Below are positions 8,353-44,298 of a stretch of DNA of 49,064 bases, one piece after another. Numbering within the stretch: position 1 is the first letter of the stretch; each line of letters starts with the position of its first letter. The translations under genes were made by a program, and so were the position numbers. The stretch lies in NCBI GenBank assembly GCA_002104905.1, contig MCFE01000661.1:1-49064 (forward strand), in the 5' to 3' direction. The notes under the pieces are model-generated. The model saw nothing but the letters and a program-made list of their open reading frames with translations, was not told where the DNA came from and ran no database searches. This stretch comes from Basidiobolus meristosporus CBS 931.73. Its lineage: Eukaryota > Fungi > Basidiobolomycota.

Positions 8353-10623
8353 ATGTCGAAGAAAACCAGTATCCAAAGGCCCATTCGCCTTTACCTGGGA
8401 ACAAACTATCACGTGCGGTTTCTCCCCGTCCGCAACTCGTTCGAAGCGAGTACCCTTTACTTCGGGGTGGCTTTGGAAAGCCTTGAGGATTTCTCAAGTT
8501 GGAAGGGTCCCTCGGAAACTAGTAAAATATTTTTTGGGTATAATCGCTGGGGGGTATTCTCTCTCTGGGATGAGGATTATCTGGGCGTCTTAGAAATAAA
8601 TGGGCGTAAGGCTAGCATCCGAGAGAAGTTATGGCATCATTTGGAACAGAAGGTAAGCCCAACGATGACTAGCCTGGTAAAACGTGTTTTCTAATAGGTG
8701 GTTGTGACCACTAATTCTTAGGGATTTTCCACGGTTGGTGTTGACCACGTTGAGCTTATTACGCAACCAAGATTCTTGGGCTATGCCTTCAATTTCTTCA
8801 ATTTCTATTTTTGTTACTCTGTCGGAAGGCTGCGATGCATCTTGGTTGAGGGTAGAAACGCAGCTGGGGATAAATGGGTCCAAATACTCAGCCGGAACGA
8901 AGAACTAGATTGTAAGCGGAAAGGGTATAGATGTTCGAATTGCTGCTTATGGAGAGGGCGGGCACTAACCTAAATCGATCATATAGGTATAAGATGACCT
9001 TTTCTGTTCCGCGCATATTTCATATATCACCCTTCAACAGCTCAACTGGAAGCTACGAAGTGCATGCCAACGATCCGCTAGATGGAACATTTGATATTAG
9101 ATTTGTCATATGGGTTGATCCTTTGCACGACAAATCCCTCGAAACCCCCCCTTCGCCGGGGCTTCTAGTCTCTGGCGTAGGTCACGCACGAAAAAAGAAA
9201 TTCTTAGCCAAGGTCAGCGCCACCGAGATTGAGTACAAGTGGTCAGACTTGACACTTGCAGTTCTCAAGGCACCGACAAGAATATGGCTCCCGTTGCCAA
9301 GGTTCACCCTGCAGTGCATTAAGCTTGCCTGCCAGAAGTCGCTCAAAGTGTACCAAGCACCAGACCCGCCCGGGTACCCAATATCTAGAGCCAGGGCTGG
9401 AGTGTTTGAAAGGTAAGCTGTTTACAACGGCCGGCGGGCCGGCCTTTCATCCGAGGATGCAAAGATGCTAACGATCAGCATTAACCTATAGCCATGCCAT
9501 GAAGACCACTTTGAAGTATTTTGAGGAGTTAAGCACGCTTGGAAATATCCACATACGAATTCGATTCTCCCACGGAATCGACATGGATCCAGCGGAATTT
9601 CATGGGAACATGGAATCCAATAAGTTAGGCATAGTCACCAATGTTGTACTGACGGTTAAAAGCTACCAATTTTTCACGTATTTCTGGATGATGCAAGACC
9701 CCATAAGGGGTTTACTGATCACTTACTCCGAGGGTCTCTGGGACGCCACAAACCTGTCTAGTTTCCTAAGAGTTGTCATAGAAAGCGTCAGGCTAGAGAC
9801 AAATAGAAAACGCCAATTGATCACAAGGGTCTCCGCCGGCTTGAGAAGATTCCTGTCGTCCGTTGTCGAATCGAGCATCAATCTGAGTTGGCTTGATCAC
9901 GAGATCACGAGGTTTGGACATCGATTGAAGAAAGACGGGGAGAAGGTGTTGATTATCGAAAGACTAAGCCAGCGGTCACGCAGAGTAAGTTGTCACTGTG
10001 AAATATGCTTGGTGGACAATGATTTTAATCACCCTCGCTTACAGCAGAAGTTTAGGCGAGCTTCATTGGGGAGAGACGGAATAACCAGAATATCCTCCGA
10101 CAGCCTCACAACCAAGCTGCTTAACCAGCTTCCCGAGTTCGACCATGTCATCCTTCCCAGTTACGAGTCTGGACTCACCAAAAGGGTGGTTGATTTCCTG
10201 CACGAGCGTTCACGTAATTTACACATCCTTAGCATTCCCACCCGGCCTAGCGTGACCAAATGGGCAGCGCATCCGATCGAGACTCTAACCGAGCCACCGC
10301 TCATCCATCTAGCTTATCTGGCATTTTACACCCTCTATCTCGTCCTTTATCAGCTGATGGCCACCTACGGCTTGGTCACGTTTGCTGACCCAAAATTCCA
10401 TAAATTCGGGGCTTTTTGGGATAGGTTGCGAGAGATCATCTCCACATCCAATCAGAGCCTGTCCCACTGGGACATTCAGAAGCGAGGGAGTATGCGCCAT
10501 CTGAACGGTGACCACTCGCCCAGCATGGAATCGGAAGAGGCGAAGCTGCTGCTGAACTCGAACGAGCTGAGGATTTGGAGATTTCTAAATTACATGAACA
10601 AAGCCCTGCTATCCTTGGAGTAG
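8353..10623 (+). CDS. DUF1365-family protein with a long C-terminal extension resembling a degenerate cyclopropane-fatty-acyl synthase (about 686 aa)
   Basis: Exons 8353-8652, 8722-8924, 8987-9412, 9492-10623 join in frame. DUF1365 motifs: LYLGTNYHVRFLPVRNSF, TQPRFLGYAFNFFNFYFCY, RIFHISPFN. The C-terminal identity is a by-eye inference. Confidence 0.8.
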
Positions 10624-11108: not shown

Positions 11109-11786
11109 CTAGTTTGAAAGGTGCAGAATTTCCTTAATTGACGGGAGAGGTTTATGGAAGTGTTTGATGGGTGGCAACTTAGGCCCAAGCTCTGGGGGGA
11201 ATTGATGTGCCGTAGCCAAGGTAGGTTGCTTGAAGCCTCCAAATCGCTTCAACCATAATGTTCTGTCGAACTCGGCCATTTTGGGGGAGACCTGTGGTGA
11301 TGGTAGAGTCATTTTCGTATTTGAGCTCGGCCTCGATCCAAGATTGAAATGCATCTGGGCTGTGATCTCGGGGTTTACTCCAGGGCTAGGTGGTGGCGTC
11401 CATGCGAGGGCCTCGTGACCTAGGGCCGGGTCGGCTTGTTGAGTGAGGTCCTGGAGGCTTTCCTCTGGGTAATAGAGGGGGTTTCCGGTGGCAATGATTG
11501 TGAAGCGTGGTGGACCAGATAACGAGCTGTAGTGGTTGGTGTCGAATATAGGGCGTCTACGACGATCCTTGCGCAGCGAATTTCTGCATGTGTCAGTAAG
11601 GCCGTATTTGATGCACCTTTGACATGGCCGGCCTTCGTCGCATTTTTTGCAGGCACGTTGGCAATTGATGCATGCGTTTTTCACCTGTCGTCGCTTCGCT
11701 ATGCAACTCCACTTCTTCTCGGAGGAAGGGTCGGCGGGGAAGATGGCGAAGTTCTGGTTAAGCTTTTTGGCGTTGGTACCAGACAT
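11109..11786 (-). CDS. Zn(II)2Cys6 binuclear-cluster transcription factor, Ert1/AcuM-like DNA-binding domain, intronless, 225 aa
   Basis: KRRQVKNACINCQRACKKCDEGRPCQRCIKYGLTDTC, followed by a basic RKDRRRR and a Pro-rich tail (LPSIKEIL). Confidence 0.92.
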   Translation of the reverse strand: MSGTNAKKLNQNFAIFPADPSSEKKWSCIAKRRQVKNACINCQRACKKCDEGRPCQRCIKYGLTDTCRNSLRKDRRRRPIFDTNHYSSLSGPPRFTIIATGNPLYYPEESLQDLTQQADPALGHEALAWTPPPSPGVNPEITAQMHFNLGSRPSSNTKMTLPSPQVSPKMAEFDRTLWLKRFGGFKQPTLATAHQFPPELGPKLPPIKHFHKPLPSIKEILHLSN

Positions 11787-38564: not shown

Positions 38565-40205
38565 GATGGTTCTTCGCACCTTGCTACCTGTATAGATGTA
38601 TACTAATCCTTCTCGCCGATATTTCCTCCCCTCATCGTTCTATACTAGTCCTAGATTTCATGGTCGAAATCAGATTATTGGAATCCCATATTATTATCTA
38701 ATTAAAAGTCCCTTAAATCCCAACCGTTCTTTCGCTCCCTCGCACTTCAGCTGCGGTTTGTCTGGCAACACGTGAGGTCTGAACATGGACCTCCCCCTCC
38801 TGGCCATTCCGTGGGCATCCCATGAAGATGCGAATGCAAGGGCTGGATTGTGTTGATGCCGAAGCTGCAGCCATCACCTGTGGTGAGCCATTGGCAGTAG
38901 AGAGGTGCTATCTGCATGTGGTACCAATTCTACGGGTCACCCTCCGGCTACTCCCTTGGATCTGGTAGCTAATGGATAGATTCCAATGTGGCGCCTAATG
39001 GTTACATCAAGGTTCGAGATGCAGCAAGTCCAAATGTAGAGAAGCTAGGCTGCAGATTGGTGATTGCGGTTCTCACATGGTCACTGAACCCCAATGATGG
39101 CTTCCCGACGACGTGCCATCCCAATGTTCCACGATGCACCTAGACTCTTCAACGGCCACGGTGGGGTTCCAGGTAAAATGGTGACTAAACCTTAATGCCC
39201 TTCACCGATATGTCGGAAAGACTAGCCCCTTTCCTGGAATCAAGAATGACCGCCAGGGTCTTCAGAAGCCTGCTCCGTTGTGCAGAACGGCCTTTGGCGC
39301 TGGATTCCGTTGGGGGTGGGGGAAAGGGGCTGGCTGCTTCCAAATCTGTTTGTCCCATGGAAAGCTCCGTTTTTTTCAGGTCACTGAGGTTGCCTCAACC
39401 CGATCTATAGATGAGAGTCTCCCCAGCATCAGCTATTGGATCAACCATCCGCAGGAAAAAGGAATCTCCAGCCGGTGAAACGGACCATTAGCTGTACTGG
39501 ATAGATGTGCGAGTGACCTGGATGATTGGCATTGATGAATCGACTGTGGTGTCACCATTGTTTCCATTCTACCCATCATACCTTGCCATTATACGGCCAT
39601 TACCTTTACAGAACCACCAATGGCCTTGCGAGCGCGTGCAGTAATTTTGGAAGCTGGGTTTGTTGCAAGTGGCCAGGATGTAGAGGCTTGACTTACCAAG
39701 ACACCAGATCACTTGTGCTCGACATGATCCCTGCATGAACAACCACACCATTATCCACAGGTAATCTCGCTCCCCAAGCCCCTATACTGAAGTGATGTGC
39801 CTTCCGACTTGAATTAGTTTGGCTGCCTCTGCAGGTCGGACGGTTTCGACCTGGGGACTCTGTGGAATCGCTTTGTCTGCAATAAGGTGGTATTTCTTAG
39901 CGGAGCAGGTGTTTTGCTGTATCCTGCTAGCAACTTTTCACTTGATCAATGGGAGTGATTGAAACCGGATCCCTTGCTACACGGCAGTAAGTCACCATAC
40001 AAATACCTGTTTGTGGTCTCAGCATATTTTGTTGGCACAGCCAATCAGCCTTTGAGCTTTCCAATTGTCAGCTTACATCTGGTGTGGTTGTAATAGGCGC
40101 ACTCCATCCATGCTCCCTGAGGGATTTCCAAGCTACACAGTCACCCATCTTATCTCATCTGTTGCGGAACAGTTGGCTGATTACTGCCATTTCTTTCTAA
40201 TTCAA

Positions 40206-40690
40206 TGTTGCATCTAGGTTTTTCTAGTTGCCTTCCTCACCTTGACCATTTGTGTACTGCCATCCTAAATCTCTACTATGGCCAGGGATTTAGCGGTTGA
40301 ATTGGCTAATATATTCCACTGTAAAATCGCATGTTTGGGGCTGTTTTAGCAACTTTGAGATTTTCATGTTCTGGGTACCTGATGTTTTGGTGAAAATATG
40401 CAAAGTAAATCCAAGCAAGGACTTTAGCCAGAATTCTCTAAGATTTGTAGACAATGATTTAAGTGACTAAGTTATGTGAATATTTAGGCGCAATTGTAAA
40501 ATTTGCAACATCCCTAATCAACTAAATACTCATATTAGCCAGCCCTAATTGTGAGCAACAATATTCAAATTTGTCTCTGGCTAATGGTTTTGTGAACATG
40601 TCTGCAGTAATTTAATCTGTAGAATAGTACCCTAAGATAACTAAGTTATTCTCCATGGAGGAGAAGTGAGAAATCTAAATTGCAGAATTA
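40206..40690 (-). mobile_element. Ty1/copia remnant B: RNase H end, degenerate PPT and LTR (about 40206-40510)
   Basis: 40330-40650 aligns by eye with 41610-41940. TGTTG at 40206 and CAACA at 40510. The left boundary is tentative. Confidence 0.7.
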
Positions 40691-40899
40691 CTCTGTTACT
40701 TCATGAGATAGAAACTGTAGGCATATAAGCTACTGATGTAGGTGTGATAATCACCATCCTGACTAGCCTGATTGACAATTTTCAGGGCACTGTCTCTGTT
40801 GTAAAGGTTTTGAAGATATTAGAAGTGGCTGGCAAAACAAGTAGAAAACATAGTTTTCACCTCATGATTAATGGGATGTAAAAGTGGTATTGAGACTTT

Positions 40900-41400
40900 T
40901 ACATGGTCTTAGGCAAAGAATGCCTAAGATGTTAGAAGACATATACTAGTCATGTTCAGCTGCCAAGAAAATGTATCTTAGGCAAAAGTCCTTGACTACA
41001 AAGATGCTGCCAGGAGTAGAAATGAAAAATCCAACTAACAGCACTACCCTGCAGGTGGATGAGATGGAATCTGTGTGTGTACCTACCACTGATGAGGATG
41101 TGATAGTAAACATCCTGAATAGCCTGACAGACAAGGTTCAGGGCCTTGTATCAGCTCTAGAGTTCAGAACTGAAGATTTGACCTTAAATTAAGCATATGG
41201 AAGGCTCCTGGATGAAGAATTAAGAAAATCAAGTGCTAATAAGAAGGAAGAGGAAAATGCCTTAATAAGTCATGATAACCAATAAAGGAGGTGTCCAAGA
41301 CCCTTTAAAAGCAATAGCAACCTGTTTTGCAGCTACTGCAAGAAGAAATGACACACATCAGACTGGTGGCTCAAAAAGTAAGATAGCCAGCAGAAAAAGC
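40900..41400 (+). mobile_element. Copia gag fragment (UBN2-like plus zinc knuckle), decayed
   Basis: KMYLRQK...DEDVIVNILNSL...LTLN*AYGRLLDEE...FCSYCKKK*HTSDW. Confidence 0.75.
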
Positions 41401-41466
41401 TTGAGTAGGGAAAGGCTGCTACAGCTGAAGATAGACTAGCCATATCTGCTGTAAGAGTCTTGGAAA

Positions 41467-43890
41467 TATTGGAAGTGAGTTGGAGTACAAGTAGATTATG
41501 TGGCTTTCACTTGATTATTTATTGAATGCCAAAGTGGTACTTATACTTTTACCTGGTCTTGGCATAAAAAACACAAAGAATGGGTTAAGGAAGCTCCCAA
41601 GAGCATGTGTGCAAGGTTTGGGACTGTTTGGGCAACTTGGAGAATCTTCATGTTCCTGGTACCTGGTATTTTGGTGAAAATATTTTTAGTAAATTCTGAC
41701 AGAGAATCTGGTCAGTATTCTCCAGGATTTGAGGGTAATGATCCAAGTGACTAAATTTGGTGAATATTTAGGTGGAATTACAAACTTTTACAACACTCCC
41801 ACTTAGCTAAATGTTCATACTGACTAGTCCTAATTTTAACCTAAGATATTCAAACTTGTCTCTAGCTAATGGTTTGGTAAATATGTCTGCAATCATTTCA
41901 TCAGTGGGACAGTAAACTAAGCTAACTAAGTTATTCTCTATAGCTTCATATATGAAATGATGTCTAATATCAATGTGCTTGGTTTTAGCATGAAAAGTTG
42001 GATTTCTACCTAATTGTATACATCCTTGATTATCTTGAAACAAAGTAAGAGGTGTTTTTTGACATAGGCCTAAATCTGTAAAAAGCTTTCTTAACCACAT
42101 TGCTTTTTTTGTAGCTTCACAGGCTGCCATATACTCTGCCTCTGTGGTAGAAAGTGCTACGGTTGGTTGCTTTCTTAAATTCAATGATATTGATCCTTTA
42201 CATGAAAGAAAGGTGTATCCTGTGGTAGATCTTCTGTCTTCTAAATTTTGTCCCCGATCAGCATCAGAGTATCCCACAGGATCCTGTTCTGACTCCTTAT
42301 AAGTGTATCTTAAGCCAATATCAGCAGTTCCTTTTAGGTATCTAAAAATCCACTTAACTGCTGCAATATGATCAGATCCATAGTTTCAATTATGTTGGCT
42401 GACAACTCCCACAGAATATGAGATATCTGGACATGTTCCTAGCATGATGTACATCAGACTGTCAATCATAGATTGATAAGGAAAGTCAGGGCTTTCAGAT
42501 AGCACTAAGCTCTCTTGATTTGGCTGAGTTTTGACCAAGTTAAGGTTTGTCTCCATTGGGGTAGCTGCTAGTTTACAGTCTACCATTTTGTACTTTTTTA
42601 GTATATCTTGAATATACTTGGATTGGCTTAGGGTAATAGTCTGGGTACTTCTGTCTATGGAGAACTTGATCCCTAAGTAGTAACTGAATTCTCCTAGATT
42701 GGACATCTTGAACTCCTTATATAGGCTGGATTTTGCCTCTTCCAATGTTTCTAGGTTATTGGTGGCTATAATAAGATCATCCACATATAGAGCTAATAGA
42801 ACTGGATTTGCTCTATCTGGCTTAAAGTATATGCTATAGTCAGCATTACTCCTTTGAAACTCAAAGATTCCAAATAGAAATCAATCTTGCAATTCAAGGC
42901 TCTTGGTGATTGTTTGAGACCATATAGTGACTTTTTAAGCTTGCAGACCAAATGGGGGTTATCTTGGTCAACAAACCCATCAGGCTGGTCCATATACACG
43001 TCCTCATCAAGTTCTCCATTCAAAAATGCCGTTTTACATCCATTTCATGAATAAAAAACTTATATTTGGCTGCAATAGCCAATATTAATCTGATGGAGTT
43101 AAACTTGGCTACCGGTGCAAAGGTCTCAGTATAGTCAAGTCCTTTTGTTTCAGAGTATTCTTTGGCCACAAGTCTTGCTTTGTATCTTTCAATTATGCCA
43201 TCAGCCTTGTATTTTGTCTTGAAGACCCATCTGCATCCAATTGATTTTTGGTTGATTGGTAATTTGACTAAGTCCCAAGTTTGATTTTCCATCAGGGCCT
43301 GATATTTGTCAGTCATTGCAGATCTCCAAAACTTTGTCTGAGGGCTATTTAGGGCCTCTTCTACAGTCTGGGGCTCATCAACATGGTCTTAATAGGCATA
43401 GGCTAAGGTTGCACCCTCATTGATATAGTAATTTGGGCTATTTCTTGTCTGATTGGATCTCCAGGCATTTGATACTGGAATGATCACTTCTAGGATATTC
43501 CTGGGCACTGATTCTAGCTGAACCATGGTTGTAGAGTCCTCTGGAGTGAAAAAATTTTCATTGTTTTGCTCTGATTCAATCCTGACAATTGGTGGACTTG
43601 GTGTTGTATCCAAGAGAAAGTGTAATAAAACTCTTGAATGATTTAACTGAACCAAAGGGACAATTAAGTGCAGAATCTTAGAATTGTCAGAGAGTGGCGG
43701 AAATATTAGCAGAAAGATTCTGATCTAGTATTGGTCTTGGATATAGCTGGGTTGGCTATAAAGACAATGATATTTGTTTGCTAGGCAGGCTAGGCTTGGT
43801 GTTCTTTGGAGTGCAAGGTATACTAGGCTTGGATAGAAACCAGAACAGATTTGTTGGATTCTTATTTTTGCTGAGACAGAATCTTAATTT
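41467..43890 (-). mobile_element. Ty1/copia element A: decayed RT and RNase H, PPT and 3' LTR (about 41467-41795)
   Basis: WVFKTK...[33 protein letters not shown], [V/M]DDL, GYSDAD, RKQPTVALSTTEAEY, KHIDIRHHFI, MIADIFTKPL. PPT AAGTGGGAG directly precedes TGTTG at 41795. Frameshifted. Confidence 0.93.
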
Positions 43891-44298
43891 TGTTGAGACA
43901 CACACTAAACCAAAAGGTTCAGTAAACTTTATTTATACTTTTCTGATCAAGTTGAATTAGTAAGTGCCAAGGGACTGGATTGATTGAAATCAATTTGGAT
44001 GTTCATAGGTGCATAAGATAAATGAAAATTACATCATCAATCAACTGATGTCTTGGCAACTGCACAGTGGTTGGATAGATCTCAGATGACTAATCACCTG
44101 GGAAGGCTTGGCAGATAGGTTGATAACGTAATGACCATTTGAAAATAGATCAGGTGTGATAGCTAAAAATAGATTTTGAGGTGGGATAAAATAAACTGTA
44201 ACTGGGATTTGTTATGTTTGGGTTAGGGAAAATCAGTTAGGGTACTAGATTTTCAAACGGAGTAAAATTGGCTAAGTTCTAAATGTTGATGCACAACA
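43891..44298 (-). repeat. 3' LTR (408 bp) of the chromovirus
   Basis: TGTTG at 43891 and CAACA at 44298; purine tract GGAAGGAAG upstream on the minus strand; TATAAATAAA inside. Confidence 0.7.

Follow-up and report, generated by a model that had tools for sequence, protein, structure and literature searches.

What kind of protein is encoded at positions 8353..10623 of the forward strand of contig MCFE01000661.1 from the fungus Basidiobolus meristosporus CBS 931.73 (assembly GCA_002104905.1), where a DUF1365 domain is followed by sequence resembling the beginning of a cyclopropane fatty acid synthase (Cfa)? An earlier note, made from the letters of this 49,064-nucleotide (nt) stretch alone (the window, to which all coordinates given below refer), had read the locus as a fungal fusion of DUF1365 with a catalytically dead, lipid-binding Cfa module, and as a pointer to a poorly described fungal fatty-acid pathway. 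The comparisons described here indicate that 8353..10623 is a single gene of five exons encoding 666 amino acids (aa). Its product is, with a probability of about 70%, a remodelled descendant of a bacterial protein type in which DUF1365 is fused to a CMAS methyltransferase domain, but one in which no methyltransferase is recognisable any more.

The assignment of the N-terminal ∼310 aa to DUF1365, already proposed in the earlier note, was readily borne out. The translations of the first three exons each matched the Pfam family DUF1365 (PF07103) with 38.7–40.6 bits (the Pfam cut-off being 25 bits) and together span profile positions 1–235: exon 1 (8353..8652; residues 1–100) covers positions 1–71 with 38.7 bits, exon 2 (8722..8924; residues 101–168, ending in phase 2) covers positions 80–132, and exon 3 (8987..9412; residues 168–310), which contains the end of the domain and the start of the following linker, covers positions 136–235. 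The ortholog from Basidiobolus ranarum (P0001; KAK9764820.1, a 661-aa hypothetical protein encoded on contig L001) matched the same family with 131.7 bits (E = 4e-38). As the note had stated, a DUF1365-domain protein, UfaO, is part of the bacterial furan fatty acid pathway (PMC7380195).

The remainder of the protein is best understood from its bacterial relatives. A word search with the B. ranarum ortholog led to a bacterial protein of 661 aa (P0003), in which DUF1365 (residues 8–236) is combined with an intact CMAS domain (residues 370–637), and the gene of which resides in an operon, overlapping the upstream amine oxidase gene and having a fatty acid desaturase gene downstream. A search with P0003 gave 3884 matches, and all of the 120 best (633–698 aa) join PF07103 to the CMAS family PF02353; some of these 120 additionally carry PF25371 (DUF7884), which in the fusion P0014 occupies residues 271–346, between the DUF1365 and CMAS domains. 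Bacterial DUF1365-CMAS fusions of this length number in the hundreds, and a view of the arrangement as a fungal novelty is not supported. The adjacency of bacterial DUF1365 genes to amine oxidase and CMAS genes, on which the note had drawn, was observed at the bacterial loci.

BLASTP aligned P0001 with P0003 in one colinear segment, running from DUF1365 through the linker into the Cfa-type N-terminal domain (N-domain) and ending at P0001 residue 431 (E = 4e-22). When the Basidiobolus pair was compared with 60 bacterial fusions by hhalign, residues 12–414 corresponded to profile positions 4–343; over the linker and the junction of exons 3 and 4, each side of the alignment needed just a single 1-residue gap. 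This colinearity sustains the claim that a single gene unites DUF1365 with Cfa-derived sequence. For residues 305–420 alone, hhalign against the matching region of the 60 fusions gave a probability of 96.5, an E value of 9.2e-10, and a score of 55.1; among 60 column shuffles serving as the control, the maximum was 19.8, and none (0/60) scored as high. The resemblance to the Cfa N terminus is therefore beyond chance. A hidden Markov model (HMM) of the N-domain matched both the ortholog (residues 355–410; E = 2.5e-7) and the window protein (residues 360–409; E = 7e-7). Judged by these alignments, residues ∼305–414 are homologous to the linker and the small N-terminal domain of Cfa, a domain which has been described as lipid-binding (PMC11387697). 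Its DUF7884-like core (residues ∼347–416) is encoded at 9601..9810 and includes the segment LTVKSYQFF...GLWDATNLSSFLRVVI; the motif that the note had singled out, LTVKSYQFF...LRVVI, was correctly placed at ∼9649–9780.

The Pfam model DUF7884 (PF25371) itself did not match the Basidiobolus protein; E. coli Cfa is likewise missed by this model, and P0014 barely accepted (29.7 vs 27 bits). Weaker indications agree with the assignment to the Cfa N-domain. The best BLASTP segment against E. coli Cfa is located in the N-terminal domain and is non-significant on its own, and the Atlas clusters nearest to the whole C-terminal half are DUF7884 and CMAS, at a sub-threshold value of 0.79. Among the Atlas clusters are standalone bacterial proteins of 129–148 aa annotated as DUF7884, so that the Cfa N-domain may exist on its own as well, with no methyltransferase.

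The last ∼250 residues behave differently. Aligned to the CMAS domain by hhalign, residues 415–666 scored 14.4, a value equaled or exceeded by 35 of the 60 shuffles and thus at the shuffle median. A custom CMAS HMM run with filters off (--max) did not match residues 415–666 at E ≤ 100, nor did the Pfam CMAS model (PF02353) match the window protein or its ortholog at E ≤ 10; the only response of the tail to Pfam was a sub-threshold one to ApbA Rossmann (E = 0.09). BLASTP of the tail against ∼145 fusion proteins yielded scattered, mutually inconsistent segments only (E > 0.3), tblastn revealed no CMAS remnant in any frame, and neither a sequence search of the PDB (E ≤ 10) nor an Atlas feature search with residues 410–661 returned anything. 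In both species, GxGxG is absent past residue ∼410 (the last 252 residues hold 9–10 glycines in total), motif I of S-adenosylmethionine (SAM) binding, xLDIGCGWG, has no counterpart, and HYD is absent past residue 300. On the lack of GxGxG and HYD the note was right, and the coordinates it gave for GEKVLIIE (9937–9960) and FDHVIL (10138–10155) are accurate. Its reading of these two as remnants of motif I and motif II, however, is unsupported, because nothing ties residues 415–666 to the CMAS domain. BLASTP also aligned LKKDGEKVLIIE (E = 0.62) with a segment of P0003 in its beta-5 region; this conflicts with that motif I assignment, and neither was used as evidence. From all these searches, the protein is almost certainly not a methyltransferase. 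What stands of the proposed dead Cfa module is thus the retention of the lipid-binding N-terminal domain and the lack of a normal SAM methyltransferase; its methyltransferase part could not be recognised.

Structure prediction gave the tail a shape, albeit a generic one. A first AlphaFold2 run, using a three-row alignment of the C-terminal half, reached a predicted local distance difference test (pLDDT) value of 43.8, and only model residues 145–236 were usable. In a second run, with full-length P0001 and with bacterial rows truncated past the N-domain, which kept them from imposing a fold on the tail, pLDDT was 73.2, with values >90 for DUF1365, ∼89 for the N-domain, 55–83 for residues 437–535, and low values for the remainder. 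In both runs, P0001 residues 437–535 contained a long helix in addition to four beta-alpha units. In the window protein, this predicted helix and four-strand alpha/beta unit (residues ∼441–540) is encoded at 9883..10242, spliced over intron 4, and holds both GEKVLIIE and FDHVIL. Fold searches with the tail returned generic alpha/beta matches only, and a Foldseek search of the PDB with the full model returned nothing below 1e-3. Downstream of this unit lies a 31-residue uncharged hydrophobic stretch (residues 558–588; 10294..10386), a possible membrane or lipid-droplet anchor. Its Kyte–Doolittle hydropathy, averaged over 19 residues, peaks at 1.53 and, in B. ranarum, at 2.15; P0003 and P0014, the bacterial fusions that were checked, reach at most 1.28, outside the CMAS domain, and have no such stretch within that domain. 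It is followed by C-terminal predicted helices (residues 589–666; 10387..10620) of low model confidence, the last 28 residues being nearly identical in the two Basidiobolus proteins. Compared with the bacterial CMAS part, the whole tail is shorter by ∼66 residues. Its location, together with an alpha/beta unit that follows a long helix, makes us lean slightly toward a decayed, remodelled methyltransferase domain over an unrelated replacement.

An exhaustive phmmer search over 1.84 billion representatives identified the B. ranarum protein as the sole genuine relative of the C-terminal half; the other match, P0002, contains 22 fn3 repeats, its score being the sum of short repeat matches, and was discarded as spurious. 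With the C-terminal 376 aa as query, a word-index search gave no match within the permitted length range. As far as databases show, the gene is restricted to the genus. Projecting the exon borders of the window onto L001 yielded P0001 exactly, with canonical splice sites and all four intron positions shared (4/4), and the two species are 70–79% identical in exons and 44–48% in introns. The proportion of nonsynonymous differences (pN) is 0.08 for residues 1–309 and 0.156 for residues 310–666, at saturated synonymous sites (pS ∼0.74–0.78), and only two indels separate the proteins, one of 4 residues in the DUF1365 half, the other of 1 residue in the C-terminal half. Purifying selection acts on both halves, and because it is strong the C-terminal region is considered functional.

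The comparison with B. ranarum also revised the exon structure. The coding region comprises 666 codons and a TAG stop, and the spliced model translates without stops. Intron 1 (8653..8721; 69 nt, GT-AG) is 43.5% identical to that of the ortholog, compared with 76–79% in the adjoining exons (76% for exon 1). The donor of intron 2 (8925..8986; 62 nt, GTATAG...CTAAC...TAG) is the sole one that both restores the frame and matches P0001, and the resulting junction, CKRKG/YKMTF, is the same in P0001. Intron 3 (9413..9491; 79 nt, GTAAGC...GCTAAC...TAG), situated ∼15 residues past the DUF1365 domain, is found at the same position in B. ranarum with 48% identity. Exon 4 (9492..9984; residues 310–474) and exon 5 (10045..10623; residues 475–666 and the stop codon) follow from the spliced model and from the comparison with B. 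ranarum. The two had been taken for one last exon, giving 686 aa in all; they are separated by intron 4 (9985..10044; 60 nt, GTAAGT...TACAG), which is in frame and stop-free, is absent from P0001, and has a GT-AG equivalent at the corresponding place in L001 with 48% identity (vs 70–79% in exons). The phmmer match to P0001 breaks at exactly this intron. Its retention would add 20 residues right after the first alpha/beta strand without breaking the frame.

Scanning bacterial and archaeal species genomes gave 489 relatives, the best tblastn matches being fusions and reaching P0001 residue ∼404–463. From these, 80 loci were kept, 79 of which gave a DUF1365 open reading frame (ORF), 29 fused and 50 standalone. 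In the DUF1365 tree, the Basidiobolus pair falls within a clade (Shimodaira–Hasegawa-like approximate likelihood ratio test [SH-aLRT] support of 99) containing all 27 fused genes used and 18 standalone ones, and the other clade consists of 32 standalone genes, including a Rhodobacter sequence. Gene transfers from bacteria into Basidiobolus are on record (PMC7466969), and on the strength of the sequence relationships it appears plausible that a ready-made bacterial fusion was acquired by transfer. At three loci from Pontiellaceae (L019, L040, and L047), DUF1365 forms an ORF of its own, which groups with fused genes from Lentisphaerota and Verrucomicrobiota; for L019, the tblastn match reaches residue 420, beyond its 258-aa DUF1365 ORF. 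These observations, along with the 8 state changes that the tree requires, suggest repeated fusion or fission in the clade containing the Pontiellaceae.

Several other explanations have to be weighed against descent from a bacterial fusion. Had the fusion been made within fungi, by joining adjacent UfaO-like and Cfa/UfaM-like genes with the spacer turning into intron 3, the position of that intron directly past the DUF1365 domain would be accounted for, and the tree, holding no eukaryotic sequences, leaves room for such an event. We nevertheless regard it as unlikely: the linker aligns to that of the bacterial fusions with a single 1-residue gap per side, the DUF1365 part belongs to the clade with all bacterial fusions, and the best bacterial matches are themselves fusions. 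That the fusion is an annotation artefact, exons 4 and 5 being a separate gene starting from the ATG at 9499, is very improbable. This ATG does open an ORF of 374 codons, and the fused model rests on comparative evidence; yet in the 79-nt gap a CTAAC branch site lies between a canonical donor and an in-phase acceptor, all conserved in B. ranarum, and the homology to bacterial fusions, which are single ORFs, crosses the junction uninterrupted.

The two remaining alternatives concern the state of the C-terminal half. It could be a Cfa/UfaM-type SAM methyltransferase that is still active, if highly atypical, considering that a long helix and then an alpha/beta unit occur where the Rossmann fold should start and that the region is under strong purifying selection. 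The missing glycine-rich motif I, the failure of CMAS and other methyltransferase HMMs to match even with filters off, a profile score equal to noise, and a region ∼66 residues too short and partly taken up by the hydrophobic segment make this scarcely credible. Still more remote is the idea of a pseudogene in decay, or of a transferred bacterial gene persisting as a neutral remnant. A very long stem branch and the loss of many conserved positions and of the methyltransferase motifs would be expected of a remnant; a frame that has stayed intact in two species with saturated synonymous sites, pN values of 0.08–0.16, hardly any indels, and four retained spliceosomal introns would not.

Against the derivation from a bacterial fusion followed by remodelling, as preferred here, speak a number of observations that keep its probability well below certainty. 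The stem leading to the Basidiobolus pair measures 2.07 changes per site, in a tree devoid of eukaryotic DUF1365 sequences the rows of which had been picked by similarity to the Basidiobolus protein itself. Across 76 bacterial DUF1365 proteins (50 standalone, 26 fused), 33 columns are conserved at ≥85%; the Basidiobolus proteins keep 23 of them, the bacterial minimum being 26 and the median 31. The 10 lost positions include the invariant P125 (changed to F), T147 (to A), and K177 (to R); H20, R22, D75, R117, N146, and S182-P183-F184 are retained. Because of these losses and the long stem, the catalytic competence of the DUF1365 domain appears doubtful. The top structural match in the fold search was E. 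coli Cfa (6BQC), a match not independent of the sequence homology, the folding alignment having included bacterial N-domain rows. The C-terminal half is known in two sequences only, and the models of residues 415–666 are weak (pLDDT 28–83); the tail may, as far as these models can tell, still have a degenerate class I methyltransferase fold, for which the fold searches are too weak here. A membrane role of the hydrophobic stretch is something we infer, and the backing for the gene model is comparative throughout.

With these reservations, the origin and the working of the protein could be pictured as follows. A five-exon Basidiobolus gene of the expressed type would derive from the DUF1365-CMAS fusion type of many bacteria, having kept the beta-barrel of the DUF1365 (UfaO) family, a linker of unaltered length, and, from Cfa, the small lipid-binding N-terminal domain. 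The SAM-dependent catalytic domain would have changed beyond recognition into ∼250 residues made up of a generic alpha/beta unit, the 31-residue hydrophobic segment, and conserved helices. Such a protein would not methylate, having presumably lost SAM binding. It would most likely be docked on a membrane or lipid-droplet surface via the Cfa N-domain together with the hydrophobic segment, and the DUF1365 barrel would be used on, or merely presented to, phospholipid acyl chains as its putative substrate. Two roles could be proposed, that of a diverged UfaO-like oxygenase or that of a non-catalytic lipid-binding paralogue. A more specific scenario, in which a bacterial fusion of the UfaO-UfaM type entered Basidiobolus, gained four introns, and was rebuilt into a new protein anchored to membranes or lipid droplets, its methyltransferase giving way to a lineage-specific anchor module and its DUF1365 barrel and Cfa lipid-binding domain being kept, is tentative at best; if true, the outcome would be an acyl-chain oxygenase that docks itself and has altered chemistry, or else a pseudoenzyme that senses lipids.

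The surroundings of the gene offer no sign of a pathway. When ORFs from the 80 bacterial loci were compared with the 49-kb window and with L001, the gene studied here was the only match, and no UfaM-like, UfaD-like, or other operon-partner gene was found in the window or at the B. ranarum locus, so that a view of the gene as the marker of a local pathway is unsupported. The gene is solitary among housekeeping genes, and the order TMEM208, ubiquilin, studied gene, Zn2Cys6-type gene is common to the window and L001. The last of these, an ORF on the reverse strand (11109–11786) with the cysteine pattern CxxCx6Cx5CxxCx8C, is arranged tail-to-tail with the studied gene, and its place is kept in B. 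ranarum (L001 13284–13486 matches window 11550–11755). Elsewhere in the window, G+C content is 0.38 at 40001–44000, compared with 0.44–0.53 across most of it. The gene is solitary, occurs in one genus as far as databases show, and is of uncertain catalytic competence, and by itself it reveals no new fungal lipid pathway; what it encodes is an uncommon form of a protein type already known.

Its interest lies elsewhere. In a furan fatty acid pathway of the UfaO type, a methylated dienoic acyl chain is turned into a furan ring with the aid of O2, and to our knowledge no other enzyme of this pathway is as poorly understood as DUF1365. The Basidiobolus protein shows that selection can hold the DUF1365 barrel and only the lipid-binding domain of Cfa together, free of the methylase; since the barrel was kept with the N-domain in the absence of a methylase, the N-domain may be argued to be the membrane-docking module of DUF1365 in the fusions. 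The protein would thereby constitute a natural “methylase-minus” construct with which the two activities could be separated.

Among known systems, the closest are the bacterial DUF1365-CMAS fusions, for example P0003, P0014, and the proteins of Paenibacillus psychroresistens and Salisediminibacterium halotolerans (annotated “DUF1365 family protein”), with which the Basidiobolus proteins share the order DUF1365, linker, Cfa N-domain, an equal linker length, a similar total length (661–666 vs 633–698 aa), and significant homology over residues 12–414. Unlike the Basidiobolus protein, P0003 and P0014 have an intact CMAS domain (285–287 bits), and they lack the hydrophobic segment; P0003, moreover, has amine oxidase and desaturase genes as operon neighbours, whereas the Basidiobolus gene stands alone among housekeeping genes and contains introns. 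With UfaO of Cereibacter (Rhodobacter) sphaeroides, an O2-dependent enzyme forming the furan ring (PMC7380195), the Basidiobolus protein shares the Pfam domain DUF1365, but UfaO is described as a DUF1365-domain protein only, and the Basidiobolus protein has lost 10 of the 33 conserved positions. A standalone DUF1365 gene of Rhodobacter sp. (L059, not UfaO itself) falls into the clade of standalone genes only, apart from Basidiobolus. E. coli Cfa (PDB 6BQC) has the small N-terminal lipid-binding domain in common with the Basidiobolus protein; its catalytic domain, with the SAM motif and the bicarbonate-binding residues Glu239, His266, and Tyr317 (PMC11387697), has no identifiable counterpart there. 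Among eukaryotes, the lipid-droplet proteins AtUFAO1 (AT1G30130) and AtUFAMD1 (AT3G23510) of Arabidopsis (PMC10940516) represent the DUF1365 and CMAS families, the likeness being one of description only. Plants have DUF1365 as a standalone protein, and their fusion joins UfaD to UfaM, an arrangement different from the union of DUF1365 with a Cfa-type domain in Basidiobolus.

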